A DNA stretch of 64,000 nucleotides from Azolla caroliniana (GCA_043228905.1 JBHGNT010000006.1:9300001-9364000), one strand, 5' to 3'. Shown: positions 31,301 to 57,583, numbered from the stretch's first letter. Notes: generated by a model not told the origin, from the sequence alone. Made by a program: numbers and translations.

Positions 31301-32388
31301 AACCACACGTCTCCTATGCCGGCAATCCGGCATGTATCTTCATTTCCCATCCGGACACAACCATGCTCACCGGCTGTGTAGGATGAGAAGTATTTCTTCT
31401 CCGGGGTCAGGTGGAACGACGCTCCGGAATCGACCACCCAGGTCATCTCTTCTCCGGCAAGGTTCAGCTCCCTCTCTTCGGCAATGAGCATGATCTCCTC
31501 TTCACTTGCCGCGAGTGCCGTCGTTCCTTTCCGGTCCTGCCCTCGCCGATCCGAACCTCTCCGGTCCGTGGCTCCCCGGTATGCACCGTTTCTCTCCGGT
31601 GACTTCTTCGAATCGGTGTCGTCGGCTCCGTTGTCCTTTCGGTAATGCCGACAATTCTTCCGGAAGTGCCCCGGCTTCCCACAGTGGAAGCATGTGGGTC
31701 TTCCTCTTGACTGCGACCGGGTCCCCGACTTCTCCCGTCTTTGCGGACTCCGGTTCCATTGTCTTCCCCGTTCCGATTCGGTAAGCAGCGCCTTCGAGTC
31801 GGAGGCCGGTTCTTTATCTCTCCGACGCGCTTCTTCGTTCAAAATACTTGTCTTTACCGTTTGTAAAGACAAGTTATCTTCGGTGCAGGAGGTGCTGAGA
31901 GTCACCACCAAGTTCTCCCAACTTTCCGGCAATGTACACATCAGAATGATGGCTTGCATTGCATCCTCCAGCGGGAACTTGATCGCCGTAAGCTGGTTCA
32001 CGAATCCCATGAACGTGCTTACGTGTTCCACCATACTCTCGCCGTCCCGGTACTTGAGGTTCACTATCTTCCTCATCAGGGAGGTCCGGTTCAACGCATT
32101 CTTCCTCTCGTAGAGGCCCGACAGCTTCCGCCACATCTCGTATGCGTTGGTGTCGTTCGCCACATGCTGTAGGACGCTTACATCGACATATTGCCGGATC
32201 GTCGCTACGGCTTTCCGGTTCAGAAGCCTCCATTCCGTCTCAAGTACCCCCTTCGGTATTTCCGACCTGTCAATCGGTTCGTACAGGTCCCGAACAATCA
32301 GAAGATCCTCCATCTTGATCTTCAAGTCGGCGTAGTTCTGTGCATTCAACACCATCATCCCCGGCTGCCCGCTGCTGCCGCCTTCCAT
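28315..32388 (-). CDS. Copia gag-pol polyprotein (1357 aa from the first ATG after the PBS)
   Basis: Uninterrupted ORF: CFHCGKPGHFRKNC, WVVDSGASFH, LWHKRLCH, LELVHTDVC, RADNGGEY, QMDVKTAFLHG, LLYVDDML, FTDSDMS, KHIQRRYHWIRE. Confidence 0.96.
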   Translation of the reverse strand: MEGGSSGQPGMMVLNAQNYADLKIKMEDLLIVRDLYEPIDRSEIPKGVLETEWRLLNRKAVATIRQYVDVSVLQHVANDTNAYEMWRKLSGLYERKNALNRTSLMRKIVNLKYRDGESMVEHVSTFMGFVNQLTAIKFPLEDAMQAIILMCTLPESWENLVVTLSTSCTEDNLSLQTVKTSILNEEARRRDKEPASDSKALLTESERGRQWNRSPQRREKSGTRSQSRGRPTCFHCGKPGHFRKNCRHYRKDNGADDTDSKKSPERNGAYRGATDRRGSDRRGQDRKGTTALAASEEEIMLIAEERELNLAGEEMTWVVDSGASFHLTPEKKYFSSYTAGEHGCVRMGNEDTCRIAGIGDVWLTTSTGCKMLLKDVRHVPEVRLNLISAGRLDDEGYTGSIRNGVMKFSKGSLIVARARKINTLYLMNARLCPEELNVAADTAGELWHKRLCHMSEKGMKRLAEDNLIPVKHVHLGKCTDCLAGKQNRTSFHSRPPMRRSAPLELVHTDVCQVETKSHGGAQYFVTFIDDHSRKLWTAPLKTKDQVLSVFKELHTRVERESGKKLKAIRADNGGEYRGQFQEYCRSKGIRLEFTVPKMPELNGLAERMNRTIMERVRSMLAHAKLPKGFWAEAMSTATYVINRSPSVPLDEDTPQKVWTGKEVSYRHLKVFGCLAYVHVAKDRRGKLDPKTRPCIFLGYGDDEFGYRVWDPVDKKIFRSRDIIFMEDKTLADWESEKKMKSSKSTGEDQLYEEQSRPARDRLTLEDPAEDGEEPEPAEEDENDTGTRPDPEMDSDEEETEEPVIEAPERRYPLRERRAPRRFPEPEHVLLTDEGEPESFEEAKHDTHSRRWLSAMQDEMDSLHENHTYELVELPKGKRALRNKWVFKLKPGDAGNPPRYKARIVVKGFQQKKGVDFDEIFAPVVKMTSIRTVLSIAASMDLEVEQMDVKTAFLHGDLKEEIYMQQPEGFEKKGKEHLVCRLKKSLYGLKQAPRQWYRKFDSFMTDEGYHKTQSDHCVFVKKFDGGDSLILLLYVDDMLIVGRDQVKIRMLKKALHRTFSMKDLGPARQILGMHIIRDRKKKQLWLSQEKYVTKVLQRFNMSEARPVGSTLPANCKLSGKQSPKTKAEKEDMMKIPYASAVGSLMYAMVCTRPDIGNAVGVVSRYMSNPGKEHWNAVKWILRYLKGTANVCLRFGSGKPELDGFTDSDMSADADTSRSTSGYVMTYAGGAVSWQSRLQKTVALSTTEAEYMAAVEAGKEIIWMKDFIRELGIRQEEYRLYCDSQSAIHLAKNAAYHSRTKHIQRRYHWIRERIEDQEFVLTKIHTDENGSDMLTKVLTPDKLEACRKRVGLERHPMPK

Positions 32389-32690
32389 TTTCTGCACTGC
32401 CGTCGCTCTGATACCACTTTGTTGCGAATCAACGCTCCGATTCTCCTTCGCCACTCGGCCACAACCGAGTAATCGCGAATCAATGCAGCAGAAAATAGGA
32501 AACACAGAGAAAGACACGATAACACAGGGATTAACGTGGAAAACCCTATACGGGAAAAACCACGGGAGTCCTCAAACTCCAACTATCACTATGAACAGAG
32601 ATGTACAATGGTGAAGCTTCAAGGCAACAACCTTGAGCTCACTGTCTTCGCCACAGGCGGCGGTAATACACAGAGGCAACGACCTCTTCG

Positions 32691-36100: not shown

Positions 36101-39100
36101 CAAAGAGTTAATCTTGATGAGAAATTTTCTCAGCAAGTTGGGGACGAAGCAAAGGGAGTTTTGCTTCATTGTGACAGGCAGAGTGTCATTCATCTAGCAA
36201 AGAATGTTGCATACCACTCTTGAACCAAGTACATACAGAGAAGGTACCACTGGTTGTGGGAGAAAGTGGAAGAAGAAGAGTTTACCCTTGTGAAGATCCA
36301 TACGGACAAACATGAATCCAACATGTTGACAAAGAACCTATCGATGGACAGACTCAGAGTTTGTTGACAGAAGACATGACTGATCGACTCCACCCATAGG
36401 AGTGAAGGGGGAGTTCGTTATGAATATGTCCCTCCAACTCCCTCCTATGGGAGAAGCCGACTGGTTGGGCCGAGTGCCGACAATCGAAGACCTGGAGAGT
36501 CGAATTAGGGGAGTTGACAGCAAGATGGTCAAAGTCGAAGACACGACCAACTAGTCGGACCGACTGAATGGTTGAAGATAAGGCTAACTAGTTGGGCCAA
36601 CTGGACAGTCAACACTCGAGACGACTAGCCGAATTGACTAGTCGATCAATCGGCTAAATAACTATTATTGTTATAATAGGAATGACAGTAACAGTGGCTA
36701 CATTTGTAAATAGCCCATACAGTGTATAAGTATAAATACACTTAGGGCAAACATAGAGTGTGTAGAACATACATAGTTGTGAGCCTCCGTTGTAATGAGC
36801 GATAGAGAGGAAAGAGGGTGTGAGTGAGAAGGAGAGAGCGGCGCCATAGCCTAGTGAGGTTTGACGCCAAGAGCCCTGTGTGGCTGATACACTCTGCGTG
36901 GAGAGTGTTGTATTTTGATCTCGTCTTGTATTCTCTTGTGTATAGTGGAATCTCTGTTCTCCCATGGTTTTCCCCATTTAGGGTTTCCACGTAAAATTGT
37001 GTATTCTATGCATTTGTTGTGTTTCTGGTTTTCCTCCGCAATATTGTCAACGATACAGTTGGTCTTTCTCAAAATCAGAAGTGAGCGAATTTCAACAGAA
37101 GCTAGGGTTCGATTATGACGAGCAGCTAGAAAAGCTAAAGGAGGCCCGGGTGGAGTTAAAGGAAAAAACGGAGCCACTAACGGATCAAGGGAAGATGATG
37201 GCTGAGATGACGACGAAGGTGATGTAGGAAGCGGTGAAACAAAGAATGGAGCTCATATCGTAGCACTAGTAGGAGTTGAAACGTTTGAAGGTGGTTTTGG
37301 ATAGGGTGCAAACATCCTACCAAACCAAATTGATGGAATATGAAGTGCAAGAAACTGTTGTTGCCGACCTCATCAAACAACTTAAGAATGAAAAAGAGGC
37401 CATGAACAACAAAACGAAATTGGGGATCGACAGGATCCGGATGATCGTTGCGGCATGGAGGGACCACACAAAGACAAAGATAAGATAGACGATTGTTCGG
37501 CGACAATGTGGAATCAATGGCCTCGACAAGCGGCAAAACACTAGATACTCCGGGCGGATACGGAGAACTGAAAGCTGGCTGATGATCATTTTTACAAAAT
37601 GGATGAAGAAAGCAATGTTACCATCCGGGAAGAATTGTCTAATGACTTTTATGCCTTGGCTGAAACACAAATCGAGGTTGTCCAGAAGCTCATCAAAAGG
37701 CTTGAAGATGATCAACTCGACACACAACTGTAGTTCGAGAGATATGAGCAGGAACGCCGACAGAAGGAAGCGGAAAGGCGAGCGAAGGCCATTAACATTA
37801 GTGATGAGGAGCCACAACCACAACCACAACCTGAGTTGCAGCCGGAAAGGGCTGGAAATGAATAGACAGAAGGAGCAGGAGCAGAGCAACAACAACAGAT
37901 AGAGGAACAGCCACAACGGATGGAAGAACCACTTGAGCCTTTGGATCAAAGTATCCTAGACATACTCGACGAGGATTCAGGGGGCTAACCATGGGTTCAA
38001 TGTGCAATGCACTGTCCCACGGGTGTGCCATGTGTTGGTCTAGAGTATGATCCGGAGGGTTAATGTGTGCAAGGACGAGTCGGAGAATAATATTATAATT
38101 AGAAGCATAAGTATTAGTTAGGAAATATTATAGGAACCGACAGATCTGGATAGTTGTACCGATCCGGATCCACACCGATTAATAGTGCCGGTAGCCAGTA
38201 AGGCACCGTTTTGTATTTCCTACCAAATGCCTATAAAAGGGTCCGGAATCGATGTAATTGGTTAGTAATATGAGATTAGGGTTTTGTTTTAATTCTATTG
38301 GGTCTTTGTGTACTTGTCGTTCTGCGCTTCAATTGCTAATCTTAGCAATTCGGAAGTAACCGGAATTAATCAGATCAGAATCGGATAACCGGATAACATC
38401 CATCCCTTAACCACCCTTTGGTGAAGTGTTCCGGAACGGACACCTTGTGTTTGAGGCTAAGTCCAGCCTAGAGTAAACAATTAAAACCACTACTCTTGGT
38501 GGTGCACGCTACTTCATGCTTATTATTGATTATTTCTCCCAAAAGGACTAAATTTGAGTCCAAAACCAATAAATACAAGTATCTTAGTTACAACACACAA
38601 TCTAAAGCCGACATGTTAATTTGCTTTGTCTTAACAATCTGGAGGTAACCGGAATTAATCGGATCGGAATCGGATAGCTGGATAACATCCATCCCTTAAC
38701 CACCCTTTGGTGAAGTGTTTTGGAACGAACACCCTATGTTTGAGGCTAAGTCCAACCCATAATAAACAATTAAAACCACCACTCTTGGTGGTGCATGCTA
38801 CTTCATGCTTACCATTGATGATTTCTCCAATAGGGACTAACTTTGAGTCCAAAACCAATAAATACAAGTATCTTGTTTACAACACACAATCTAAAGCCGA
38901 TGTATGGGATTTAGAATCAAAGTCCCTAGTCATCTCTAGGGATGTTTATTTTGTGGAGTCTAAGTTGGATGACTCTAGGCTTTCACCTGAGTTCATGGTT
39001 GAAATTCCAACTACTCCGAAATCTCCTATTTTAGACGAAGATGTCGCACCGTCAAACCCCCCATCTCCTCCTACTCAACCTCTAACTTCGCCAACAATTC

Positions 39101-41725
39101 GAACCTCTCCCTCAACTCCAATCGTTTCCCCTCCCTCTACACACCAGTTTCCACCACTTCCCAAGTGGCTTCAAGCCACCATTCATGATTCCCATCTCTC
39201 CGATGTTGAACTTCATGAGTATACATCTGGTTCTCCGACCAACATGAAAAGAACACGTAGGTCACAACAGCCTCTTCACTCATGCAACTTTGCCTTACTA
39301 TGCACTGTTGTGCAATCACAAGAACCCACAATAGCAAAAGAGGTATTTGTTCTTCCGAAGTGGAAAGCAACAATGGAAGTTGAACTTAATTCTATGGAGT
39401 AGAATCATACATGGGAGTTGGTCCCTTGGCCTCAACATTGGCAAGTCATTGGATTGAAATGGATTTTCAAGACCAAGTACCATGTTGATGGTACTTTGGA
39501 TAAGCATAAGGCACTTCTTGTTGCAAAAAGCTACTCACAAGTCGAAGGAGTGGATTACGAGGAAACTTTTGCTCCAACGGCAAGGTACACCTATATTCGA
39601 TGTGTGCTTGCACTTGCTGCTTACAACAGATGGCCCATCTTTCAAATGGATGTCAATGGTGACTTGAAAGAGGAATTTTATGTTGAACAGCCTCTAGGTT
39701 TCGAGATTCCAAAGCAGAAAAACATGGTCTACATGGGCTTAAAGCAAGCTCCCAAAGCTTGGTCGGACAAAATTGATACCTTCTTTCTCTCTCTTGGGTT
39801 TCGGCATTGCAGCTATGATGACAACAATCTCTATGTTTTTTCCCAAAATAATTTCCTATGCTTGATCATATTATATGTTGATGACCCTCTAATTACAGGG
39901 TTCCTTGCTTCTAAAATCAAGGAGCTCTACGCTGACCTCAAAACAACATTCGAAATGATTGATCTAGGACTTCTCCATTAGTAAATAGGTATGGAGGTCT
40001 ATCAAACATATGGTGGTATCTTCCTCAGCCAACATAGGTATCTCTAGCAGCTCCTTGAGACATATAGCATGTCAAATTGCAGGCCACTCTCCTATCCAAT
40101 GGATCCAAACTCAAAGTTATCTCATGAAGACAATTCTCCCATATTTGAAGATATCACGAAATATAGAAGGTTAATTGGTTCTCTTCTTCACTTAATTTAC
40201 AGTAGGATTGATTTGTCCTATAGTGTGAGTATTCTCAGTCAATTCTCAAGCGCTCCAAGACAAATTCATTGGCAAGCAGCTATTCGAGTTCTTAGGTATT
40301 TGGCCAACCAACTCGACTTTGGTCTCTCTTTTATAGAGGTGGCATTGAGCTTCTTGGCTACTCAGACGTTGATTGGGCGGGTGATATTGATTCTATAAGG
40401 TCCACTTCTAGCTATTGTTTTACATTAGGTTCAAGCTTGATTTCTTGGAAATCATAGAAGCAAAACTCAGTTTCTACTTCATTGATAGAAGTTGAATATC
40501 GAGCCTACTTGGATACTTGCAGTGAGTTGCTATGGTTAATGCAATTATTTTGTCACGTTGGTGTTTTGCAAGACTCTCTTCTTGCAGTTTTCACTAACAG
40601 CCAAAGTGCTTGTGGCTTGGCACATAGTTGAACATTTCATGGTAGAACAAAACATATTGAAGTGCACTACCATTTTGTTAACACGTTCGCGTTCACAAGT
40701 GGAAGGATTGCGCATTCCACTTGTAGAATCTTCTTAAAACGAAGCAAATACACCCTCTCTACAAAAATTGGATGCACTAGTATCACATGTTCCTCAACTT
40801 GATGAGAATTTGCAAATATAAAAATACATGATAGGTCTACGAGTGGAGATCATTAGAAATCATGCAAGTTTAGACGCGTTGATAAGTAAATGTAGGCATA
40901 ATAAAGTTCAACAATGGCTCAATATGTCACTACTGTTCGACAAGGGAAACACTAACTTAAAGACTTATATTAATTAGGTAAGTTTTACAAAAATATCAGG
41001 TGTACTTGTATCCATACTAATAAAATGAGTTATAATTTATACTTTGACCCATACGTGCATGTATGTAATTGTGGAAAATGTAGGATAGTGCACATTAGGA
41101 TAAGTGATTGGAATAACTAACTTATTAAAGTATTCAATACTTGTATTTAAAGTTGATCTAATCTATTCCTCAGTTTGTTCATATGGGATCAAACCATACG
41201 TATATAATTGTGGACAATGTAAGGCAGTGAACTTTAGGATAATGTCGTGGAAATAACAAACCTATTAGGCTTTCATACCTGTATTTAAAATTGATCTACT
41301 GTATTGCTTAGGTGATTCACACAGGATCAAATTCCAAACGATAACGCAACTGGAACCATTTTCAACACACTACACAATCTAAGCAGAAATGGAATAGAAA
41401 CATACTAGTTTTAACAATAGAAGACAAAGATCCATAATAACAACATGGACAGTCGTGGCAACAATTGTAGGGCCATGTTCTGTTAAGGTTAGCTTGGACC
41501 AAAATCAACCTCAATTTAAACTAATTCATGTTTCTCCATAAATTTGGTAGTCAGCTATGCACGCAGTGAAACCAATGTCATAAATCTACTAACCAAGTAT
41601 ATAAATATAAAATTGAAACATATAGAAGATTATAAAGAATAGAATCCACTAGGTAAAACCCAAAATTTGTATTAATAATGTGAAATCCTAACAAATTGTC
41701 AGTGTCATTTTCTTCATAGAGTCTA

Positions 41726-44700
41726 TTACATAGCAATCAATTCATCAACGTCATTTTCTTCATCATCTTGTGTAGAACTCTCTTCGGCTATACATGCATT
41801 GACTTCCCCTATTAGCCGAGCCAACGAAATATCTTCTATAAGCTCATCATCAAGCTCTCTTAGCTCCCCCGGTTCGCCGGCTAACGGAGGAATAGGCTCT
41901 CGCGAAGCAGGTTGAAACCTTTTTGTATTAGCGAGGTTCTTTGCACCGACCTCCTCATCCTGGTCTGGGCACTCCCACAAAGCCTTAATCCGCATATTAA
42001 TAAATATAACCTGGTCCTCGTCCTTCTCCAATGCAACTGTATTTCTAAAGAGCTTCAATGCACATGCAGATGTCGTTCCTGTGATGTAAGTAACAAGAAG
42101 ATTTAGTTGTCAAACGAAAAAAAAAGGGATTAGTTATCTCAAGATCGTTACCCTAGTTCAAGGAATACTTGCGCCAGAAAAGAGATCTAATATCCAGTCT
42201 CCTTCGATAGAAAACATCTCAATCAAGCGCATCATAAGCCGTTGAGGTTTTTGATATGGGTTGACAGGTCCCCGTTCTGTCATGGTGACATGTCGTAATT
42301 TCTGTGTCACTGTTGGATATACCAACAGATTTGAACCTCCCACTTCATTAGAATGCTCCTTGATTCTCTGTTTCTTAATTTCATTGAAGTAGCCAATCGT
42401 GATGTATTCAATGGCATTAACGAACCGAAAAGTTGGCCCTCTATTTACATTGGTCTTGATCCTATAAAAAATAATACATTGAGTTAAGAATAGATTGAAC
42501 AACCTTAAGAAATGCAATATAGTGAAAGACACCTATAAATAATCCTTACCATGCAAGGTTCTCGATGCCATGGCAACGAGATCTCAAAGCTTGAGCTACC
42601 GAGTACCCTTGGTCCATACTATGAAAGACAACTATTCGCCACAAGGATGCAGTCGTTAGCTCAGCGAAATCCTTGACCATCTTCTCCAATTGTTTAAACC
42701 TAAACGGTTCATCGTCGTATGATGACCCAGCCATTCGAAATCCGTAAGGAATATTTGCAATCATTAGCGTATATTCCTTCTTTGGCACCTTTTGGATCAA
42801 GTCGACGACATCACCGCAAACCACATTGTAGTAAAGATCTCTCATAATATCTTTTTTGTCGCTAAATTTTTTAAAGGAGCCATCTTCCTCCATTTCGTAC
42901 GCCTTGACTAAGCGACGATCCTTTTCTTTTCTGGCTCGCTCGAGATGTGCAAGGAAGGATGTAGGGAAATCGTGTATATCCTTAACTTCTCCTTGTTTCT
43001 TGCCTCGACACGGTTTCTAATAGAAGCAATAGGACATCATGTATTATTATACAAGCTCTACATATGATGAAAGGGTAATGAAAAACCATCAATACTAACC
43101 CAATCCTTGAATGCAATAAAATACTCTGATAACGCCTTATATGAAGACGTTAGAGGATAATCCTCGTTCACTTGTTCCCAAGTTATACATCCAAGTTGTT
43201 TCATCATAACTTCTTGGATCTTCATGTACACCTTATGACTGTAAAATTAGAAATCAAGATTAGAACTTTGAATTACACCAGATAGACTACAATTTCAGTA
43301 TTTGAAAGACTTACTTATTGAACTCAGTGACCATTTCTTCAAGGCTTAAATCTTTCGCCACAACCCTTGACAAAACACACACAAGAAGTTGTTCGTCCTT
43401 AATACCTTGCATCGCTCTCCACAGAGACAGCTTCATGTTGTCTGCCGCTTCTTCAATTGTCAAGTCAATTTTCTTGGCAGCTTGTGACTTTAACTCTAGT
43501 TGAGGGTCAACCTTACATTTCTTTTGTCGTTGACCCTTTACCTCCTTATTCTCCCACATTGAGAAGATTTGATCTTGTAGGTCCCATACTTCTCCATTTC
43601 TAAACGTCAATTGAAACCAAGACTCATATTTTCGAAGACCATCGGACTTAACATTATCATCTACAACAATGCCGACTTCATGTAGACATTGACGTCGTAG
43701 GCCTGGATGTAACTTCACACCAAACTTTTGTTTCACGTCTAAATACTCGTGGTGGAAGAACCGTATACGCTCAATGGACGACATTTTCTGCCTATAGTCA
43801 TTATCATTATTATGGTCCCATGCCAACAACTTAGCCTCTTTGGTTGTGAGCCCAACATAAATTTTCCACTCAGTATACTTGAAGAAGAAAGTCGTTGGAT
43901 GTTCTCTCACAAGTTGCCGACGTGCCTCTACTGAATGCGATCCACCAATGACAAAGTAATTATATTGATCATGCTTTCTAATATCAAAATCTTCAATGGT
44001 TTCACATTCTTCAGGATCTACCATAACAATGAAAGGCACCACAGTGGCATGAGGATTAATTTTCATTTTTTTCTTGAGATTTTGAACATGCATGCGGTGT
44101 GGCTCTCTAATCTCAAGTGGTCGTCGACCTGTTTTTTCATCAATAAGGGGCCGATGGATGTGGGTTATAGGCAAATTAAACACTTGCCCTTTCCTGACCA
44201 GTTTACGTTGCATTAACTCTCTCCTTATCTTATTCTGCTCGGATGACAAAACACCTGATGCCAGCTCAGCTCCTGGCGTCCCCTTATTGTCCTCCTCTTC
44301 GTTTTCACTTGTTGAATTGGTGTCCGACATTTTGGTTGTCTTCTTCTTTGGTGGTCTTGACTGGACTTTGGATACCCTTTTTGTGGCCTTCAATGGGGAG
44401 GGCACTTCATCTCTTAGAGTTACATGGCCTTGTATATATGGCCTCAAGGTAACAATAAGGTTTTGTGAGCTTTCAAGATCTTTTTTGAACGCTTCTGGCC
44501 CACAAGATTCCTTTACTAAAACGTCTTCTGAAAGGAACACTTTACGTACCCCCTTGGAGCACTCTATCATTACCAATATGTTGGCCGAATCTGCAACTTC
44601 GTAGTCAAATCGTAGAATACGGCCATACATAAATGGGGTTTCCTTTCCAAGCTGCCCCTCCCCCTTCTTCTTTGTTGTATACAATACGACTTTTTTCTTT

Positions 44701-45979
44701 GAGTCGACATATTGCATACACCATTCCTTGTCCGTTAGGTCAGGGTCAGGAAGGTCTTCACCTCCAATAGCAGCGACAAGTTTCTTTTGGCTAACGTCAA
44801 TGTGTGGCTGAGATTTTGTCTCCTCGTTGAAGAGAAGCTTTTTTCCTCTCTTCATGGTCTCAGGAGCTACCTTGGTCTGGGCTTCGATTGGAGAACCCTG
44901 TATGCGAAGCTTTATTTTCTTCACGGGTCGGTCTGACAGGTTCTCAAACGACCTATTTAAGAAAGTATATGCAAAAACATAAGTTAGGTGGTCACGTAGA
45001 TTAAGGTTGTATATTAAAATATAAATATGAAGATGAAGAACAATTCTCACTAGCAGGCGATTAGTGGTGAAGTGAAAATATCAATCATGCATTCAGAGTA
45101 CATGGTAGTCCTATATTCAAAAATCTAATCTAGGCAGGGCTATTCAAACTAGAAAATATATATCGTAATAAGTAAACAGGGTTATATATTCTTTTAAAGA
45201 GTAGGTATGACTTATATAGATTCCAGACCTATATTGAGGAGAATTTGCTATCATAAAGGCAATTTGTGGGTTATTTTCTACTATTTTAAGCTATAGTAGG
45301 TCATAAAACACCTATAATTAGGGCATGTTTTTTTTAAAAAGTAAGGCAAGTCAACATAAAGAAGACTGATTTTGACAGACAATTTGATATCTTTTCCACA
45401 CAATAATTAATTGTTGCCCCAAAAACACAAATTTTCTCTTTCAAAGCCTTCTTTTATACAGGAACTCGATACGGCGTATCGAGATCCCGTTTAAAGTCTA
45501 GGTTTTAAACACGAACTCGATACACCGTATCGAGTTCCCGTTTAAAGTTTAGGTTTTAAACAGGAACTCGATACGCCGTATCGAGTTCCCGTTTAAAGTT
45601 TAGGATTTAAACACGAACTCGATACACCGTATCGAGGTCTCGTTTAAAACCTAAACTTTAAACGGGAACTCGATTCGGTGTATCGAGTTCATATTTTTTT
45701 TTTGCTTTTTAAACAGGAACTCGATACGGCGTATCGAGTTCGTGTTTAAAGTGTAGGTTTTAAACAGGAACTCGATACGCCGTATCGAGTTCCTATTTAA
45801 AAAGCAAAAAAAAAATATGAACTCGATACGCCGTATCGAGTTCTTGTATAAAGTTTGTATTGTATACAGGAACTCGATACGCCGTATCGAGTTCTTGAGC
45901 GACAAAACATATTTACAAAAATGTCCACAGTGTTAGAGGCCTACCTGGAGTCCTTGCGCTCGATTCTCTTTGAAGACAT
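41726..45979 (-). CDS. Transposon cargo gene: ParB/Srx-like domain fused to a beta-class N4-cytosine/N6-adenine DNA methyltransferase (~974 aa, 6 exons)
   Basis: Exons 45979-45945, 44952-43315, 43238-43100, 43016-42550, 42461-42169, 42078-41726; all introns GT-AG, phases consistent, 2925 nt, no internal stop. ParB-like part: R...HVQNLKKKM...PFIVMV...YFVIGGSHSVEARRQL...EAKLLAWDHN...MSSIER. MTase part: VVCGDVVDLI, LMIANIPYG (motif IV), LAWIK...RFVNAIEYI, NPYQKPQRLMMRLIEMFSIEGDWILDLFSGA(R)TTSACALKLFRNTVALEKD (motifs X, I, II). Confidence 0.85.
45462..45894. repeat. Array of nine 25-bp palindromes at an exact 51-bp period (in intron 1 of the cargo gene)
   Basis: Consensus GAACTCGATACG(C/G)CGTATCGAGTTC starting at 45462, 45513, 45564, 45615, 45666, 45717, 45768, 45819 and 45870, separated by 26-bp AT-rich spacers. 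Confidence 0.97.
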
Positions 45980-46105
45980 GGTTGATCGTGTGGTAGTGGA
46001 GGCGGAGATCGCGCTTTTGTGCTTTGTGCTCTATGTGCTCTAAGTGCTCTGGACGCTCTGTACGCTCTTGGGTGCTCTTGTGACTGAAATATGACGAGGT
46101 CTTCC

Positions 46106-46113
46106 TATTTATA
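46106..46113 (-). promoter_or_regulatory. TATA box of the ParB-MTase gene
   Basis: CCTATAAATAGG on minus, ~127 bp upstream of the ATG at 45979. Confidence 0.65.
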
Positions 46114-46793
46114 GGGATTGACCACATTGGTTAAAGTAACCATAGTCACCTTAACCAAGGTTGGTAAGTTTGAGGATAGTTAGTTGGTAACCACAGTCAC
46201 ATTAACTAGAGTAACTTATGATTGCATTAATGATTACCATGTCAAACTAACATATTGATCAATCTTTTATAGTCATAACAACCTGCAATGACTTCAAAGG
46301 TCATGAAGGAGACAATGATAGAGGTTCATGAATGTACCAATGATTGATTAACTCTCAAATGTTGTGTATTAAAGATGTGGGCATGAATTAACCAATGATT
46401 GATAAGTCTAATATTTAAAATGATGAGCATTAAAGAACCAATGAGTGAGAGGTTCTATATCAAATATGGGTGCCATTAATTAGCCAATGATTTTAACATG
46501 ATCCCACATATTTATGGCTTGGTAATGATTAGATTTATATTATACTTGATTTAACTTCATATAGATGTAGTTTAAATAATAATTGATATTTTAAATACAA
46601 TTACTTTATTAAAAATAAAAAATTTATGTATTGCATTAACATAATATTACATAATATAGACAATCTATTGATTTGGCTTTTGTTTAGAGAGAAGTTTATG
46701 TTTAGAGAGGAGTATATGTTTAGAGAGGAGGTTATTAGTTTTTTTCCTTACCCTAAGCACATAACTTATAGAGCCCTATCTAGACCTTAAGCC

Positions 46794-49574
46794 ATGAGTG
46801 AAGATTCACCGTTCTCGATTGAAGAATATTGTTTGTCATCAGACTCATCGTTTTCTACTGAAGAGTATTGTTTGTCGACAGAGTCACCATATTCGATTGA
46901 AGAATATTGTCTGTCAACAGACTCACCATATTCTATCGAAGAATATTGTCTGAGCTCATCTACAGGGAATGTAAATAATGACACATGTGAAGAGTTCTCT
47001 ATTGAAGAATACGATATTAATAAAGATACGGAGAATGAAGGTAGTGCCAAGGAAACATTGAATAACATTGGCGATGGTCACAACAGAGAATTAGATTGTA
47101 ACAAGGTTACACCAACCTCTATGCAGGAAGAGAAATCTAGGAGCCCTATCCATATTAGAAGAATCCCACGAAGAATTCGTTTGGCTAGATTTAGCTTGGT
47201 GACATCAGATAAACAGATTGGTTTTGATGTCAAAAAAATATGTTGTGCCCGTGGTTGTATGTCTATGATTGGAAAATCAAAGTTGCGAGAATTAAGGCGA
47301 TACTATTTTTCGATGACCGGTGATGAGCAAGACACTTACCTCGGGTCACATATGCAACTAGTATCTGACAAATGTACGGGGATCAAAGTATCATTCGAGT
47401 ATTATATCTTCCATGCGCAACAGATATGTAGAGTTGCATTTAAAATTGCGTTATGTGTTAGTAACATGCGGCTACATAAAGTACAACAACGTCTACTTAG
47501 CGGGGATCAGATGCTCAATTGTAAAGAGGTTCCAAGTATGAAAGGTGCAATTGGAAGACATTCTATTGGTTGGATGAAAACTTACTTTCAGTTAAATTGT
47601 GAAGTAATGCCCACTACAGGTAGGATGCACCTTTCTGATAATTATACATGTCGGGAAGTTTATGATGTCTATCGATCTGATATGTTGGGCTCACGTAATA
47701 AGTCTATCACCTATAGCCAATTCACAAGATTATGGAGAGCTCGGTTTTCAAATGTTATTATTCCTTAAAAGTTTGTGCAAATCTTAAAAGTTTGGCTAAA
47801 GGTGCAAAGACATCAATGGAAAAGGATATGAGTAAGAAGTTACTACAAGAGCATCGTGAGGCACAATCCTTAGAACGAAAGAAGGTGATGCATCATAGAG
47901 AGAAGTGTTTGAAGAGGCCCGAACAATACATGTGCTTAATGATAGATGGCATGGACCAGAAGAAGACATGTTTGCCGCATATGCGGAGGCTCCCCAAAGA
48001 TGTCAATGATGAGTGCCTTGTTCAAATGCACTTGGTGGGATGTTTGGCTTATAATAGGTCTGTTCGACCTCATGTCTTCATTACTTACCCCAATGTTCAC
48101 AATGACCCTAACCTAACAGTTACAGTCTTTCACTGAGTTTTGATGTCTTGGGGCCAACCTTTCCCCCCTGTTCTATACATTCAATTGGACAATACTGCTA
48201 GAGAGAACAAAAATTCAACTGTATTTGGCTATCTAAGTATGTTGGTCAACCAAGAATTGTTTAGGAAAGTGAAAGTCAATTTCCTTTTGGTTGGCCACAC
48301 ACATGACCATATAAATCAGATGTTTAGCACATTCTCTAGACAGTTGTCTCGGCATGATGCTTTCACTTTACCTAAACTATTTGATGTCATTTGTGATGCA
48401 TATACACGCCCAAAAGTGTTACACTTGAAGGAGGTATATAACTTTAAGAGATATATATCAGATGGGGGTGGTGGGAATGTTAAAGTGCTTGCTCAGTTAA
48501 ACAATATAAGTTTCAATCACATTTTTATGATAAAGAAAAATGGAATAAGTGGTTCTACACTTTTGTATGCTAAACAATATTCATCTTCTACAACATGGGA
48601 ACCTGAAGGTGGTTGCCAGTTATTACTTTGTATGCTGAGTACAATTGTCCATGGAGCTAAGCAAATGCCAATTGAGAAGAAAGGACAGTTGCAGAGCGAC
48701 TTGGTATCAGAACAAAAACGGTCATGGCTCCAAGCCTTAGAAGAAAAAAGAAAGCATATTGAGGCCGCCAAGAAATATGCCGCACAACAAGACACATCAT
48801 GGTGGGATGTATTTTATAGTGATCAGAAAGAAATTATAGACAATTGTGTATCTGTTGATAATTGGAATTTGGAAACGCCATTCACATGGTCGCTGCAACA
48901 TGATCGCGTAAATAGAACTCCGGAGCAACTAGTAAATGCGATTAATAACAACTTAGTCCATCCACAACAAAGAGACATTTATGTGGGACCAAGGATGACC
49001 AAAGCAGCCGAAGCTAGATGGCAAGGCAATTTGCAAGAGCTCACCGCGGGGATGTTGATTGCAACGCCAGCTGATGAGAACTCACGATCAAGTCTATAAA
49101 TGTTCTAGAAGTGCTAATGCATTTTGTCTTGGTAAAATTCTAGAAGTGCTAATGCATGAAATAGAAAACACGATCAAGTCTATAAATGTTCATTGGTACA
49201 ACACTAGAAGTGCAAATGCTTTCACAGGTAAGTATACATTGGAGATGATTGAATGCCCAACAAGAAGGGGAGGTAGGAAGAGGGAGCGAAACATTCGTAA
49301 CACCTCGACCCTTGATATCTCTGATGTGGATATCATCGTGTACGACTTCACACTTACAAAAGCCGGATGATTAAGGAAGTCAACAATAGATATAATAAAA
49401 GAAAAATTACCAGGTCTACAAGGTGGCTCGAGTCAAAGGCAAACGAGATCTGCTACATATAATCTAGAGCCAAACCATTTGGTTTATGACGAAGATAATG
49501 CACTGATTGGTACATCCGAGGATGATGAGGAGGAATCGTCATTGTATATTAGTTATAGTAGTGATTCTCCGTAA
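46794..49574 (+). pseudogene. Sola1-like DDD/E transposase, disrupted
   Basis: CC.RGC, ICRVAF, MIDGMDQKKTCLP, LYIQLDNTARENKN, FLLVGHTHDHINQMFS. Frameshift/deletion at ~47765, in-frame TGA at 48134 and 49368, templated patch at 49083-49122; final stop at 49572-49574. Confidence 0.82.
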
Positions 49575-50392
49575 AGGAGTGATCATGAATGTATATTTGG
49601 CTATTAAGTGTAACTACATTCCGCTTGTAACAAATCGAGTAATATAAAAGCATGTGTTTTGAATTCTTATGATTTCTAAAAAATTGTTTCTTATAAAATA
49701 ACATTGCTTGTAAAGTTTGTGATATAAATTGAGAATGTATCTTTTTGAAATTCGTCTTTTTTTAGTTACTTCTAAATCACGAAAATAGTGGATTTTTAAC
49801 CTTTTTCATAGTATGTTTGAACATGTATGATACTGGTATCAATGTGTTTTATAACATCATTGAAAAAGCCCTAAAATCAACCAAAATTTCCCTTATCCTT
49901 CCATTTATGCGCGATCCTTCCACTTGTGAACGCGAACGTGTTTGTTCATGAATTAGTGAAATCACAAGTCATCAACTTGGCATATTGTCGTACTCAAGAA
50001 ATGTGACTGATTTACTTAGTAAGCCACTTCCAAGGCAAGCCATTGGTTAGTTCCCCGGTCGACTCAATGTTGGACCACCATTCTGGAGCTGAGAGGAGAT
50101 GTTGGAGGCGGCAGCTCCAAACCTGCACTCTCTTTCATCTTTATTATCTCTCTTCCTAGATTCTTCTCTCTCTAGAATTTGCAACTCTCTTTATTATTCT
50201 TATTTACAAATTACTAAGTGCATGTGCAATGTTGCACATCCTCGTTTTATTTGTCCCAGTCGATTTTCTCACCATAGCCGAAAATCCTCACGACAATGTT
50301 CCCTTATTTTCTTAATTGCTTCTACACCTCGTTGAGTTGCTTTGAAACCCAGTATCTGAGGGCACTTGGTTCTTCTTTGGTTTTCTGCTTCA

Positions 50393-53421: not shown

Positions 53422-56400
53422 TGTTGAGATATCAAGCTCAACTAGTTTAATCTAGTTAGTCAACACATGTAACTTAGTAGTTACCTAGATCAAATCTAAT
53501 TAATGTGTTGACCTTAAGCCTTTAATAGGACCTTGTACTTAAGTGGGATATTCTAGATCCTCCACTCCTTAGTACATTTAATGTAGGACTTACACATAAG
53601 TACCTATGTTCTACCCACACATGTGCACCTTTGCACATGGGTTGTATATATACCTCATTGTGGGTATTTTTGTAGGGGATAACACTTTTCAATATAGTCA
53701 ATCATCTCCCATTTATCTTTCTGTTTAAGTGTAACTTCCTCTCTCTCTCCCTTCCTCTCACACACTCTCACGCGCATATCATACTAATCTTCCGCTGCTT
53801 AACGTAACCATATAATTAGTCTCTAATTAACCCTAGTTAATTACCTAATTACTTAACATGGTATCAGAGCGCGTGGTTTAGGAAATCCACTAAGCCCACT
53901 GCTTATTCGTGATTGTGTGTTCGAGACGCCGACGACAAATCCCGGCTATTCGCTATCCGCTACCGTAGTGCCGCTACGAAGGACATGTACGCGACCAAGA
54001 GAAGAAAAACAAAATAGAAGACACAACAATCAAATGAACAAACAAATGGGAAGCTCGCTCCCTAGCGAAAAGCTAGACCGAAGCAACTATTCATCTTGGG
54101 AGTACAAGATGAATCAATACCTTGTCGGCCAAGGGTATTGGAGCTACATCAACGGCACACACGAAAGCAAACCCGAAACCACACACGCCAACTACCCAAC
54201 GTGGGAGCAAGGCGCGAGTCGGGTAATGTATTGCTTGGCAACATGTGTAAACGACCACATGCTTAGCCACATTCGTGACGCCAAGACACCCAAAGAGGCG
54301 TGGGAAAATCTCAAGAAGATTTTCACCGCGGACACATCCGCGCGCAAGCTTCAACTCCGGCAAGAGTTGAACAACATACGACAAAAAGAAATGTCTGTGA
54401 CGGACTACACCGCCAAGATCAAGAGCATTTGCGACTCTCTTAGCTCTATCAACGTCAACATCGACGAGGACGAGATGGTGCAAGTATGCTTGGGAGGCCT
54501 CGCACAACGATTCAACCCGTTGAGAACGGCAATCTTGGCGAGAGATACCCCTCCCTCGTTCTTCAACCTCCAATCAATGCTATTGGTCGAAGAAAACCAC
54601 GTTCAACCAAAGACCAACACATCGGAAGGACAAATGCTCTTCTCCGATACGGATGGTGCCCATAGACGAGGTCGACGCGGAAGAGGTCAATTCGACCTAT
54701 CCCATGAAGGGAATTCACAATTTCGGCAAGGAAACGGAAGCCATCGAGGAACCTTCACAAGAAGGGGGAGCTTCCACGCCGAACAAGGTTGGCGAACGAC
54801 GCCACCTACGTGCAACTATTGCGGCAAAATCGGCCATCGCGAAGATGAGTGCCGAAAAAGACGAAGCGAGTCGGCCTCAACAAGCCGACAACTCACAAAT
54901 TACGCCACAAACGCGGAATATGTGGACTACGGCGGACTCTTCGTGATGAGGCATAGAGCGAATTCTATGATGGCCTCCGATCCCGCAAACTCCGCAAGCA
55001 CCTCCAACTCCGAACACGCGTGGTTCGTAGACTCCGGCGCCTCGCACCACATTACGTCGCACCAAGAGTGGTTTCGCGACTTGTGAACGTCGGATCGACC
55101 CGGCTACATAGAGACCGGAGATGACACTCCGCATCCCATTCGGCACATCGGCGATGTCCCATTCGGGAAAGAAAGCGAGCAAACTTGCATCAAGAATGTC
55201 TTGCACGTGCCCACAATAACAAAGAATTTGGTCTCGGTCGGCCAAATCGTGGAGCAAGGCATGCAAGTCCGCTTCAACAATGACGGTTGTTTCATCGAGA
55301 AAGACGGTTGACTCATAGCCAAGGAACGGAGAGACGGTCGCTTGTTCATCCTCGACTCAAACGAGGTAAAATCAGCCATGTACGCCAAAGGTCTCAAGAC
55401 CGAGACAAACATCGAGTTGTGGCACAAGTGAATCGACCACGTAAACCTCCAACGACTTCGCGGAATGCAATCAAAGGGAGTCGTAATCGGACTTCCGGCT
55501 TTCGAAACGAAACGAGTCGACCGAGTGTGCGAAGCATGCCAACTCGGCAAACAACATCAACTCCCATTCCCAAAGGAGAGCTCCGCAAGCAAAGGCCTCC
55601 TTGACGTCATACACTCGGATGTATGGGGACCGACTCAAACGCCGACGCTCGGCAGATGCCGCTACTACGTCACCTTCATCGACGACCACTCGCGCTACGC
55701 ATGGATATACCCGATGAAGAAGAAGAGCGAACTGCTCTCCCACTTTCAAAGGCTCAAAAGCCAAGTGGAGAAAGAAATCGATCGACACATTCGATGCCTA
55801 CGATCAGACGGAGGAAAGGAGTACTTCTCCGACGAGTTCACCTCCTACCTCCAAGGTGAAGGGCATTCGTAGAGAATTCTCATGCCGACACACTCCCCAA
55901 CAAAACGGAGTAGCCGAGAGAAAGAATCGGCAAATACTCGAGGTAGCACGCGCCATGATGCGTGAGAAGCACATGCCGAACTTCTATTGGGCGGAAGCGG
56001 CATCCACGGCAGTCTATCTCATGAATCGAAGCACCACAAATAGCGTGCACGACTTTACTCCATACGAGATCTTCATTGGAAGAAGGCCCATCCTCTCAGA
56101 CCTCAAGGTGTTTGGAAGCATTGCGAATGTACGCATCCCGAACGAAAGTCGAGAGAAGCCCGACGCGAAGTCGGAAGAATGTACAAATGCGAAAAAGGCA
56201 TACAAATGCTTCAACCCTTCGACCCGAGCGGTGCGGATAAGTCGCGACGTCGTTTTCGACGAATCGGCATCTTGGTATAAGCCCGATGCGACTCCATCGG
56301 ACCCGATCGAGGAAGAGTTGAACGCCAACTCGGACGACGAAACTCGGCCAAGTCCTCCACCAAAGGACAATCCAAGCTCTACCAAGCTAATTGGCCCACA

Positions 56401-57583
56401 AGAGCCTCCACGCGATGAAAACACGTCGCGACCAAGTCCGACATCGGACAAAGGCAAAGTTAAGATGCCCGAATATGAAGTCGAGGTCCACCCCGACAAC
56501 CGTGATTCGGATGATTCGGCTCGCTCACTAAACGATGAGTTCGGTGTACCCATCATGAGGACACCCGGAGTAAAGAAGGCACTCACATCGACAAACGAGA
56601 AACTCCGCCGCTCATCACGAGAGGAGACCCAAGTCACTCGTTACGCCTACAATGAGTATATGGCCCATCACTATGCCCTCGCGATGAAGGTAGTGGCCGA
56701 ACAAGAGCCCGAGGATCCAAGCCTTCGTCACAGGCTTGAGGGGGAGAACAAAACCGCGGAGAGCTACGCAACGAAGCCGCGAATACGCGAAGAAAGCCGC
56801 GCAACAAAGCCACGGAGAACCATGCAACGAAGCCGCGAATACGCGAAGAAAGCCGTGCAACAAAGCCGCGGAGAGCTGCGCAACAAAGCCGCGAATACGC
56901 GAAGAAAGCCGCTCAACAAAGCCGCGAAAAGCCGCGCAACGAAGTCGCGAATACGCGAAGAAAGCTGCGCAACGAAGCCGCGGAGAGCCGCGCAACAAAG
57001 CCGCGGAGAGCCGCGCAACGAAGCCGCGAAGACGCGAGGAAAGCCGCGCAACACCGGGAAGAAAGCCGCAAGCTGCACCGATGCCGACGAAGCCAAAGGA
57101 AGCTAAACCAGACGTTGGACGCCTCACACTTGAGCTTGAGGGGGCGTGTTGAGATATCAAGCTCAACTAGTTTAATCTAGTTAGTCAACACATGTAACTT
57201 AGTAGTTACCTAAATCAAATCTAATTAATGTGTTGACCTTAAGCCTTTAATAGGACCTTGTACTTAAGTGGGATATTCTAGATCCTCCACTCCTTAGTAC
57301 ATTTAATGTAGGACTTACACATAAGTACCTATGTTCTACCCACACATGTGCACCTTTGCACATGGGTTGTATATATACCTCATTGTGGGTATTTTTGTAG
57401 GGGATAACACTTTTCAATATAGTCAATCATCCCCCATTTATCTTTCTGTTCAAGTGTAACTTCCTCTCTCTCTCTCTTCCTCTCACACACTCTCACGCGC
57501 ATATCATACTAATCTTCCGCTGCTTAACGTAACCATATAATTAGTCTCTAATTAACCCTAGTTAATTATCTAATTACTTAACA
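53422..57583 (+). mobile_element. Ty1/copia G, non-autonomous (gag-PR-INT, no RT/RNase H); gag related to copia E
   Basis: 437-bp LTRs at 53422-53858 and 57147-57583 (about 5 differences seen); TSD CAAAC; PBS at 53859; PPT before 57147. Motifs KLDRSNY, CNYCGKIGH, WFVDSGASHH, VIHSDVWGP, LRSDGGKEY, PQQNGVAERKNR; in-frame stops present. Confidence 0.93.
56750..57075 (+). repeat. AAGCCGCG-rich degenerate tandem repeat in the 3' region of copia G
   Basis: Recurring AAGCCGCG / GCAAC(A/G)AAG / AATACGCGAAGA units. Confidence 0.85.

Follow-up and report, generated by a model that had tools for sequence, protein, structure and literature searches.

The window studied here (the whole 64-kb stretch of Azolla caroliniana DNA that was analysed, 64,000 nucleotides) contains a six-exon gene for a ParB-like protein fused to an amino-methyltransferase. 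Very likely, this gene is carried as an accessory by a DNA transposon of the cut-and-paste kind, probably a Sola1 element; the present copy is a decayed relic. Members of the family carry a DUF7869 transposase gene and, head-to-head with it, the six-exon ParB-methyltransferase gene. The predicted product of the latter comprises a small beta-rich N-terminal domain, a ParB/sulfiredoxin fold with a helical extension, and a beta-class methyltransferase.

The limits of the transposon, its terminal inverted repeats (TIRs), the target site duplication (TSD) and the transposase gene are as follows:

40680 to 49942, no strand assigned: whole DNA transposon of 9263 bp, delimited by TIRs, TSD and shared termini
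40680 to 40715, no strand assigned: left TIR, 36 nt, with a TSD copy (TGTT) at 40676-40679
49907 to 49942, no strand assigned: right TIR, 36 nt, with a TSD copy (TGTT) at 49943-49946
46794 to 49568, plus strand: DUF7869 transposase pseudogene (Pfam PF25273 at 1e-39)

Both TIRs are complementary at 35 of their 36 nt. The transposon is inserted in a copia element with a 4-bp target duplication (TGTT), and the in silico removal of the element together with one TGTT restores the copia pol reading frame. The transposon terminus is 94-100% identical in four related loci (L012, L013, L002, and L008), beyond which the flanks are unrelated. In L002, the other complete element, the flanks differ and a clear TSD was not found. 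The DUF7869 gene is oriented head-to-head (divergent) with the methyltransferase gene, an orientation also present in L002, L003, L005, L007, L008, and L009. In three of these loci (L005, L008, and L009) the transposase is an intact single ORF of 869-915 aa, and the module formed by transposase and ParB-methyltransferase was found again in fern contigs.

With respect to the transposase itself, DUF7869 was its sole Pfam match, AlphaFold2 modelled the core of this domain at a pLDDT of 39.5, which was judged unusable, and DUF7869 was mentioned in none of the papers searched. Sola elements reportedly produce 4-bp TSDs. The assignment to the Sola1 type is probable and rests on this TSD length and on a gene arrangement like the published one, not on a transposase comparison. 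An earlier note on this DNA had described the ParB-methyltransferase gene without a transposon context; TIRs, TSD and the adjacent transposase gene place it inside a DNA transposon, so that it is an accessory gene of a multi-copy cut-and-paste element and not a free-standing host gene.

The ParB-methyltransferase protein is present in Chara, Riccia, Adiantum, Ceratopteris, and Ginkgo. There are 29 homologues of exon 2 at 52-91% identity, and Ginkgo Gb_10123 stands at 37%. The dN/dS values of the family, 0.04-0.11, indicate strong purifying selection, and are quantitative only for the closer pairs, synonymous sites being saturated in the older ones. The presence of introns, the insertion in a copia element and the existence of relatives in plants rule out bacterial contamination. 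The long residence in a eukaryote that had been deduced from the introns holds for the transposon family, from Chara to Ginkgo, but not for the present locus. No report of such a transposon-borne design from land plants was found in the literature.

The gene model proposed in the earlier note, in which four ORF pieces (579, 115, 124, and 110 aa, all on the minus strand) are joined through five introns into an open frame of ~974 aa, was reproduced with exactly matching coordinates. The introns (45944-44953, 43314-43239, 43099-43017, 42549-42462, and 42168-42079) all have GT at the 5' end and AG at the 3' end (5/5), range in length from 76 to 992 nt and are rich in AT (25-34% GC). Once joined, the six exons (41726-45979, minus strand) make 2925 nt, that is 974 codons with zero internal stops, and the N-terminus of the product reads MSSKRIERKDS(R). 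The features of the gene are:

45945 to 45979, minus strand: exon 1, predicted only; begins with ATG (45979-45977), comprises 11 codons and 2 nt, and is followed by donor GT at 45944
43315 to 44952, minus strand: exon 2, with a disordered N-terminus, a beta-rich domain, a low-complexity linker, and a ParB/Srx-like plus helical part
about 44406-44753, minus strand: beta-rich domain of exon 2, from the AlphaFold2 model
about 43314-44246, minus strand: predicted ParB/Srx-like and helical DNA-binding part of exon 2, from the AlphaFold2 model, Foldseek and VIA
43932 to 43946, minus strand: GGSHS, in the place of the nucleotide-binding motif of ParB/Srx proteins; compared in 23 sequences
43100 to 43238, minus strand: exon 3, linker helix region, 65-96% conserved in all covering loci, GT..AG on both sides
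42550 to 43016, minus strand: exon 4, N-terminal half of the methyltransferase, containing motif IV
42744-42755, minus strand: motif IV, NIPY, in exon 4 (AAT codon at 42753-42755)
42169 to 42461, minus strand: exon 5, target-recognition region, NPYQKPQ..L motif and start of motif I (DLFSGA); PF01555 match
41726 to 42078, minus strand: exon 6, rest of motif I (split R codon, then TT) and acidic C-terminal tail
41726-41728, minus strand: stop codon, at the end of exon 6

The four internal junctions show GT..AG at homologous positions in every covering related locus, and are kept while coding identity falls to about 50%. Intron lengths vary among these loci (68-113 nt, with one of about 420 nt). 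Since junction positions are conserved while intron lengths differ, a chance reading of the splice model is unlikely. The intron-1 acceptor (pyrimidine tract, AG/G, same phase) is kept in 7 relatives, and the conserved coding sequence begins exactly at this acceptor, so that an exon upstream of exon 2 is required. The frame runs unbroken from exon 1 into exon 2. Nucleotide similarity to exon 1 is absent in distant loci, and the contigs of close relatives break inside the palindrome array described below, short of exon 1 and its donor. A TATA box lies at 46106-46113, upstream of the predicted exon 1. No transcript was found, a result uninformative on transcription: the two RNA runs retrieved had almost no sampled sequence words in common with the locus, and nothing was placed on the 4301 bases compared. 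Thus, the sharing of the four internal junctions and of the intron-1 acceptor by the covering relatives confirms on comparative grounds that the six-exon gene with five GT-AG introns is real, exon 1 being predicted only.

The N-terminal part of the protein was modelled with AlphaFold2 from exon 2 and a 23-sequence alignment. The pLDDT is 66 overall and about 85 in two domains, with values of about 80-89 in the ParB/Srx domain. The top 45 Foldseek matches of this model are all of the ParB/Srx type (ParB, Noc, KorB, PadC, sulfiredoxin, and SbnI), the best with an E of 2e-5 and a probability of 1.0. The VIA Z values are 9.3 for PadC, 8.4 for KorB, 8.2 for pNOB8 ParB and 7.9 for Srx, and the structural alignments to KorB and pNOB8 ParB, which would take in a putative helix-turn-helix DNA-binding domain after the N-domain, reach residue 546, but with an rmsd of 7-10 A. 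At the sequence level, Pfam gave no ParB_N or ParBc match on exon 2 at E up to 10, the 23-sequence family profile found no ParB among PDB sequences at E up to 1 (spurious gp41 matches fell in the linker only), and tblastn of the ParB part against phages returned nothing. A predicted ParB/sulfiredoxin fold is supported for the N-terminal part, by fold only. The ParB-like assignment of the earlier note stands as a fold (VIA Z 8-9), but not as a Pfam detection: of the two profiles it had named, PF01555 was matched, by exon 5, and ParBc was not.

The GGSHS motif, which the earlier note had compared with DGxHR, is not a sign of decay: it is essentially fixed across the 23 family members, where G336, G337, H339, and S340 are invariant and S338 is nearly so. 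The arginine of the ParB/Srx motif (GxxR, DGxHR or GGCHR) is replaced by serine family-wide and, therefore, CTP/ATP-switch behaviour cannot be assumed for these proteins.

Intron 1 contains a further feature:

45452 to 45897, no strand assigned: nine 25-bp palindromes of the GAACTCGATAC-GNC-GTATCGAGTTC type, with a 51-bp period

The palindrome core motif is absent elsewhere in the window. Arrays with a TCGAT[AG]C core are located upstream of exon 2 in L002, L004, L009, and L011-L015; in the three that were measured (L002, L004, and L009) the period is 51 bp. ParB proteins act as dimers on palindromic sites. Most of the elements examined have such a phased array just upstream of exon 2. In the mechanism that we propose for intact elements, the ParB-like part would bind, as a dimer, the palindromes of its own element, and this binding would bring the fused methyltransferase to the element (self-targeting). 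The enzyme would then methylate the DNA of the element, most likely at N6 of adenine, as motif IV of the family begins with D. It is possible, and we suggest it tentatively, that intact members function in land plants and charophytes as modules that mark themselves, putting N6-methyladenine or another amino-methyl mark on their own DNA.

Alternatively, the array could be unrelated to the ParB-like protein and be a transposase-binding site, a replication or hairpin element, or an intron satellite. Such a reading, which we hold to be somewhat unlikely, would accommodate the variation found among elements: the number of palindromes ranges from 2 to 12, the array is missing or minimal in L005 and L003, and the Ceratopteris array is in intron 3 with a 31-bp period. 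The intergenic region of L005 has zero TCGAT[AG]C half-sites and, taken with the position in Ceratopteris, this indicates that the array is neither obligatory nor fixed in place. However, the TCGAT[AG]C...G[TC]ATCGA core and its dyad symmetry are retained among elements while the arms vary, the 51-bp period persists across elements whose proteins are merely 53-72% identical, and the array adjoins the ParB-methyltransferase gene rather than the transposon termini. The dimeric binding of palindromes by ParB proteins also argues for a connection, as does the same association in the ParB-2OG genes of red-algal transposons (10.1101/2025.02.11.637652).

In the methyltransferase part, exon 5 scores 32.3-34.1 bits with PF01555 (N6_N4_Mtase), whose gathering score is 26.7; all searches and fold predictions on this gene were run exon by exon. 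The result for exon 4 by itself is a weak UPF0020 match, located at motif IV. Motif IV (exon 4) precedes motif I (FSGA/RTT, at the exon 5/6 junction and split by intron 5), the permuted order that had been described from the sequence. A full-length fern relative, P0034, matches M.RsrI at 7e-5, followed by TTHA0409 and CcrM, which together with the PF01555 score upholds the earlier beta-class call. Phage records that match the family methyltransferase domain number 547, with 24-28% identity across 85-95% of the domain; one of these phage proteins is a ParB_N plus N6_N4_Mtase fusion encoded beside a terminase, its ParB_N scoring 24.9 bits, slightly below the Pfam gathering score of 26.3. Exon 4 had no match among phage sequences. 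A word-indexed search with the Ginkgo methyltransferase region retrieved Ginkgo and Adiantum only, with no prokaryotes, and is uninformative on origin.

Motif IV reads DIPY in the fern relatives fetched and DFPY in Chara and a metagenome relative. As a family trait, I occupies the position where beta-class enzymes usually have P. The AdoMet loop is FSGTG in every covering relative, FSGSG in Ginkgo and FSGAR in the present copy; the family thus fits FxGxG and the present copy does not. Judged from its motifs and matches, the domain is a beta-class N6_N4 DNA amino-methyltransferase, M.RsrI-like, for which DNA methylation itself is predicted. PF01555 includes N4C and N6A enzymes alike, and a D in motif IV is the N6-adenine signature. 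This residue favours N6-adenine over N4-cytosine as the predicted target of the family.

It is rather unlikely that the family enzyme makes N4-methylcytosine, or acts on RNA, instead of producing N6-methyladenine in DNA. The breadth of PF01555 would allow it, land plants possess a bacterial-type 4mC writer, Marchantia DN4MT1 (10.1101/2021.02.12.428880), and the authors of the Ectocarpus study leave N4C versus N6A undecided (PMC12477816). However, DN4MT1 has TSPPY, typical of N4C enzymes (10.1101/2021.02.12.428880), whereas the family motif is D-I-P-Y (D-F-P-Y in Chara), and among solved enzymes it matches best M.RsrI and CcrM, which both act on adenine. With respect to RNA, the fusion to a DNA-binding ParB fold suggests a DNA substrate.

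Several alterations set the present copy apart from its relatives. Its transposase gene is broken into three frame blocks (at least two frameshifts) and has an internal stop. In the methyltransferase, motif IV has changed from DIPY to NIPY and motif I from SGTG to SGAR, both changes being private to this copy; the others read ADIPYGF, with GAT or GAC. Each change (D>N and G>R) is a single G>A substitution, and all covering copies have DIPY and SGTG, which bears out the motif damage already suspected. The R codon of motif I is split across intron 5, and the G>A that replaces the second glycine of the AdoMet loop alters the last exon base before the donor; the same substitution weakens the intron-5 donor as well. 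Private changes at sites invariant in nine other copies amount to 15/372 here versus 2/359 in L012, and C>T plus G>A changes are in excess among private substitutions (46/117 here, 21/88 in L012).

The present copy looks dead, a decayed and non-autonomous relic. Given the replacement of the catalytic D by N and of the second AdoMet-loop glycine by R, together with the weakened intron-5 donor, any protein that it may still produce is probably inactive. An open 974-codon frame beside a broken transposase is somewhat unexpected under pure decay (a rough estimate of its chance is 5-10%).

NPPY is the working motif of gamma-class N6-adenine methyltransferases, and M.PvuII reportedly lacks the last glycine of FxGxG. 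Hence, an N in motif IV could be regarded as normal and the R in the loop as tolerable, and the present copy would still encode an active enzyme, its frame being fully open although the neighbouring transposase gene is broken. We consider this improbable: D and G are kept by every related copy covering those sites, G>R removes an AdoMet-contacting glycine while altering the last exon base at the donor, 15 private changes fall at invariant sites, and the RNA comparison yielded no transcript. A domesticated host gene, that is, a methyltransferase of bacterial origin that has resided for a long time in the plant genome and now serves the host, would suit the open frame with its canonical introns, the strong purifying selection on the family, and the TATA box with a plausible start codon, but it is most improbable and largely refuted by a locus that lies between conserved TIRs with a TSD and within a copia element, that always has the transposase gene as its partner in the loci compared, that belongs to a family of many copies with near-identical elements in differing flanks, and in which both catalytic motifs, as well as further invariant positions, have undergone private changes.

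The reading as a transposon accessory gene has parallels in other lineages. In Sola1-1_Ec32 of Ectocarpus (Genome Biol 2025, PMC12477816), a ParB-like plus N4/N6 methyltransferase gene lies opposite the transposase, and it is proposed in that study that the element's own DNA is bound and epigenetically modified. The likeness to the present element, a DNA transposon with a ParB-methyltransferase gene, is one of description. However, Sola1-1_Ec32 measures 21.5 kb and encodes a protein of 1104 aa, compared with 9.3 kb and 974 aa here; its host is a brown alga, whereas the present family occurs in streptophytes (Chara, a liverwort, ferns, and Ginkgo); and the portion of its description available leaves a phased palindrome array, such as that of the present element, unmentioned (PMC12477816). 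The PAG3 gene (ParB plus 2OG oxygenase) of Plavaka, from red-algal giant transposons of Bostrychia, is likewise a transposon accessory fusion of ParB type to a nucleic-acid-modifying enzyme, adjoined by tandem inverted-repeat arrays and also proposed to be self-targeting, but its enzyme is a dioxygenase and it belongs to the Plavaka/CACTA superfamily and to another host lineage (10.1101/2025.02.11.637652).

Phage and prophage ParB-N6_N4 fusions, for instance that of Streptococcus phage Javan69, have the same domain order as the plant protein (PMC4738411; 10.1101/2025.10.10.680097), and their methyltransferase domains are homologous to that of the plant family at 24-28% identity. These fusions are of about 420 aa, intronless, with a Pfam-detectable ParB_N, and are tied to DNA packaging, beside terminase genes. 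In contrast, the plant protein is encoded by a gene with five introns and has, in addition, a beta domain at its N-terminus and a long linker. Its ParB part has diverged beyond recognition by Pfam, has no arginine in the motif and is accompanied by a eukaryotic transposase. M.RsrI and CcrM share with the family the position of motif IV before motif I, the xPxQKPxxL helix and the D..F.G.G.T AdoMet loop, but they are stand-alone bacterial enzymes with DPPY, the plant family having DIPY and the present copy NIPY and SGAR. Marchantia DN4MT1, from a land plant, and rotifer N4CMT are also bacterial-type amino-methyltransferases in eukaryotic nuclei. However, both belong to the host, have a motif of the SPPY type and lack a ParB domain (N4CMT has a chromodomain), whereas the family studied here is carried by a transposon and its motif is of the D type. 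Kinship with DN4MT1 was rejected, the motif type being different.

To our knowledge, DNA marking in land plants is almost entirely 5-methylcytosine, the single clear exception being 4mC in Marchantia sperm. The present copy adds little by itself, as a decayed member of a design already noted in algae (PMC12477816). The family is of wider interest: from Chara to Ginkgo, a phage-type amino-methyltransferase fused to a predicted DNA-binding fold has been kept by strong purifying selection, usually with its probable landing sites, the palindromes, beside the gene. If intact copies are active, this suggests that certain transposons of plants produce a DNA mark of their own, which would constitute a transposon-encoded amino-methylation system in embryophytes and could give the element an epigenetic identity of its own, for instance by countering 5mC/siRNA silencing or by regulating transposition. 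Such activity would also bear on the disputed reports of 6mA in plants, on the interplay between transposons and silencing systems, and on the origin of host amino-methyltransferases.

The gene on the minus strand at 41726-45979 is part of a mobile element. This element is a streptophyte DNA transposon carrying, as cargo, a gene for a ParB-fold/beta-class amino-methyltransferase, and the window copy of it is dead. The earlier note was right about the fold, the enzyme and the mutated motifs; its interpretation is altered by the surroundings, the gene being transposon cargo.

The earlier note had connected four separate open reading frames through five introns into one frame of about 974 aa. These pieces (579, 115, 124 and 110 aa) are present on the minus strand as named, the sequence reads GT..AG at the exact proposed coordinates in 5/5 introns, and the six joined exons comprise 2925 nt, that is, 974 codons with 0 internal stops (script count). 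The introns are AT-rich (25-34% GC). The joined exons were only counted; searches were carried out with single exons or with full-length relatives.

Features of the methyltransferase gene and of its divergent neighbour
ATG 45979, donor 45944, TATA box 46106-46113, minus strand: exon 1, predicted from the window sequence
45944-44953, minus strand: intron 1, 992 nt, GT..AG
43314-43239, minus strand: intron 2, 76 nt, GT..AG
43099-43017, minus strand: intron 3, 83 nt, GT..AG
42549-42462, minus strand: intron 4, 88 nt, GT..AG
42168-42079, minus strand: intron 5, 90 nt, GT..AG
46794-49568, plus strand: DUF7869 gene, divergent from the methyltransferase gene

Exon 2 matches 29 homologues sharing 52-91% identity with it, as well as a single Ginkgo protein sharing 37%, and 15 contigs encoding exon-2 homologues (L001-L015) were fetched. 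In each of these contigs that spans them, exons 2-6 form distinct blocks whose order is unchanged, and every gap between blocks in the contigs covering exons 2-6 is GT..AG at the homologous codon position. Among relatives, the introns vary in length (68-113 nt, with one at about 420 nt) and cannot be aligned in sequence. The earlier note had named junctions unconserved among copies as evidence against its model; those of exons 2-6 are kept in the covering contigs and, because of this conservation, the gene model is no numerical accident. The acceptor of intron 1 is kept in seven relatives (pyrimidine tract, AG, then the G completing the split codon), in which protein similarity starts exactly at this point. 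Therefore, an upstream coding exon is required. The predicted exon 1 has no similarity in the contigs of distant relatives, and the contigs of close relatives break inside a repeat array. Among the sequencing runs listed, none contained the stretch.

With respect to the enzyme, Pfam N6_N4_Mtase matches exon 5 at 32-34 bits (gathering score 26.7). The catalytic motif (motif IV) is located in exon 4 and the AdoMet loop (motif I) at the exon 5/6 junction, which is the permuted beta-class order. Among solved structures, P0034, a full-length relative from Adiantum, matches M.RsrI (7e-5), then TTHA0409 and CcrM. The exon-5 score and the M.RsrI match bear out the beta-class methyltransferase proposed in the earlier note. 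The methyltransferase domain of another relative, P0049, matched 547 phage records at 24-28% identity, covering 85-95% of the domain length among the matches listed. As a sequence signature, the D-type motif IV points to adenine as the candidate target base.

The ParB-like part of exon 2 (residues ~236-546), also proposed in that note, was not detected by Pfam or PDB sequence searches and is recovered by predicted structure. An AlphaFold2 model based on an alignment of 23 family members has a pLDDT of 66 overall and about 80-89 in its folded parts. Its top 45 Foldseek matches are all of the ParB/Srx type (ParB, Noc, KorB, PadC, sulfiredoxin and SbnI; best E = 2e-5, probability 1.0), and a second, independent structure aligner gave PadC (Z 9.3), KorB (8.4), pNOB8 ParB (8.2) and sulfiredoxin (7.9). 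On the predicted structure, the ParB-like assignment is correct at fold level. The GGSHS motif is essentially fixed across the family and is therefore not a sign of decay. It does not contain the arginine found at the nucleotide site of ParB/Srx proteins, for which reason a CTP switch should not be assumed. The ParB-like part is preceded by a confidently predicted beta-rich domain (exon-2 residues ~67-182; 44406-44753, minus strand), whose matches are weak (Z 4-6; M18BP1 SANTA, Z 5.8; PH-like folds, Z ~4). This domain may serve as a module for binding chromatin or proteins.

Positions 40680-49942 end on both sides in a 36-nt inverted repeat with 35/36 complementarity. In silico excision of this element (9263 bp) together with one TGTT leaves a copia pol frame uninterrupted (...HYHFVHELV...), indicating that the element entered a copia retrotransposon and duplicated 4 bp at the target site. 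The host pol gene occupies 38707-40679 and 49947-50100, with RVT_2 and SH3_retrovirus matches upstream. The element ends of L002, L008, L012 and L013 have this terminus at 94-100% identity, and in L012 and L013 gene identity to the window copy is just ~80%; these two contigs share identical exon-2 proteins and have different flanks. The 36-nt terminal repeat (L012:4865-4900, L013:5286-5321, L002:288-323) is 97-100% identical, versus ~80% or less for the genes; thus, the ends are better conserved than the coding sequence. Of the DUF7869 homologues, placed head-to-head likewise, those of L005, L007, L008 and L009 are single intact ORFs (869-915 aa), and those of L002 and L003 are shorter ORFs. 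By a language-model look-alike search, DUF7869 proteins occur in streptophytes, oomycetes and echinoderms. In its initial part (46818-46952, plus strand), the window transposase gene contains 3.5 tandem copies of a 39-bp unit encoding a repeated S-I-E-E-Y-C-L-S-x-D-S-P, a motif that the family consensus also shows at the N-terminus of the transposase. The ParB-methyltransferase gene is carried as cargo by this element, a cut-and-paste DNA transposon. A Sola1 label may be suggested by two features, the 4-bp duplication and the matching gene arrangement.

Intron 1 contains nine 25-bp palindromes with a 51-bp period (45462-45894), whose core is absent from the rest of the 64-kb window. Arrays with a 51-bp period are present upstream of exon 2 in L002, L004 and L009, arrays alignable with that of the window occur at the same place in L011-L015, and L003 and L005 have a weak array or none. 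Across elements the arms vary; both the dyad symmetry and the core TCGAT[AG]C persist. In Ceratopteris richardii (MU262555, L001:11795-12029), the array consists of TCGATGCC..GGCATCGA palindromes at a period of 31 bp and lies in intron 3, not ahead of exon 2; the annotated protein of this fern ends before the methyltransferase part. A dimeric ParB-type DNA binder encoded beside the array would be the obvious candidate ligand of the palindromes, and the array is probably cognate to the ParB-methyltransferase. The short-read contigs of the close relatives L004 and L011-L015 all start within the palindrome array. Since the array evidently breaks assemblies, exon 1 and the connection with the transposase are prone to be overlooked in public annotations.

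The window copy is decayed. Its transposase homology is spread over three frame blocks, which implies at least two frameshifts, and contains an internal stop. In its methyltransferase gene, 15 of 372 positions that are invariant in the nine other copies have a private amino-acid change; the comparably distant relative L012 has 2/359. Motif IV is ANIPYGF in the window copy versus ADIPYGF in every covering related copy (GAT/GAC to AAT), and motif I is SGAR/TT versus SGTG/TT in every covering relative. The latter G>R change affects the last base of exon 5, so the intron-5 donor is weakened too. The earlier note had placed both motifs one G>A change away from the usual form, which is correct: the natural related copies covering these sites, compared without building a consensus, all have D and G. 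Among private substitutions, C>T and G>A amount to 46/117 in the window copy versus 21/88 in L012, an excess expected for a 5mC-silenced element. By a rough estimate, the chance of a long frame staying open beside a broken transposase is ~5-10%, which is mildly surprising and within chance.

Elsewhere in the window, the copia gag-pol ORF at 28315-32517 (minus strand; 1400 aa) is complete, with gag, zinc knuckle, protease barrel, integrase and RVT_2; it lies in a GC-rich stretch (55%), and this copia element is possibly intact. Another copia gag and pol region (53917-57106, plus strand) is broken into several ORFs and probably represents an element in decay. A 545-aa pentatricopeptide-repeat (PPR) gene at 1978-3615 (plus strand) supports a plant nuclear origin of the window.

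An exhaustive profile search yielded 692 cluster representatives, those named being from Chara braunii, the liverwort Riccia sorocarpa and the fern Adiantum nelumboides; additional family members are found in Ceratopteris and Ginkgo. All these named hosts are streptophytes with motile sperm. There are no angiosperms among the matches listed, and this pattern may be due to nothing more than sampling and the extent of the listings. For copies sufficiently close for quantification, both protein halves have dN/dS values of 0.04-0.11; in older pairs synonymous sites are saturated and pN is 0.06-0.30. By these sequence comparisons, the family is old and constrained.

Different reports describe related arrangements. 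Prophages commonly encode fusions of ParB with an N6_N4 methyltransferase (10.1101/2025.10.10.680097; PMC4738411). For instance, Streptococcus phage Javan69, among our phage matches, has such a fusion adjoining terminase genes, its ParB_N scoring 24.9 bits, slightly below the Pfam threshold of 26.3. The Marchantia 4mC writer DN4MT1 has a TSPPY motif (10.1101/2021.02.12.428880), whereas the window family has a D-type motif. In Bostrychia, tandem inverted-repeat arrays adjoin ParB-2OG oxygenase accessory genes (10.1101/2025.02.11.637652). No description of a ParB-methyltransferase transposon module in land plants was found in the literature searched. According to PMC12477816, the Ectocarpus Sola1-1_Ec32 family (21.5 kb) carries a gene for a ParB-like plus N4/N6 methyltransferase protein opposite the transposase, as the cargo gene of the window element also is. 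Self-binding and self-modification of the own element are proposed there for this family, with reference to the Bostrychia genome and to Iyer et al. 2011. The Azolla element is thus a land-plant member of a transposon design already noted in algae, and the functional idea for its family would be self-targeted amino-methylation.
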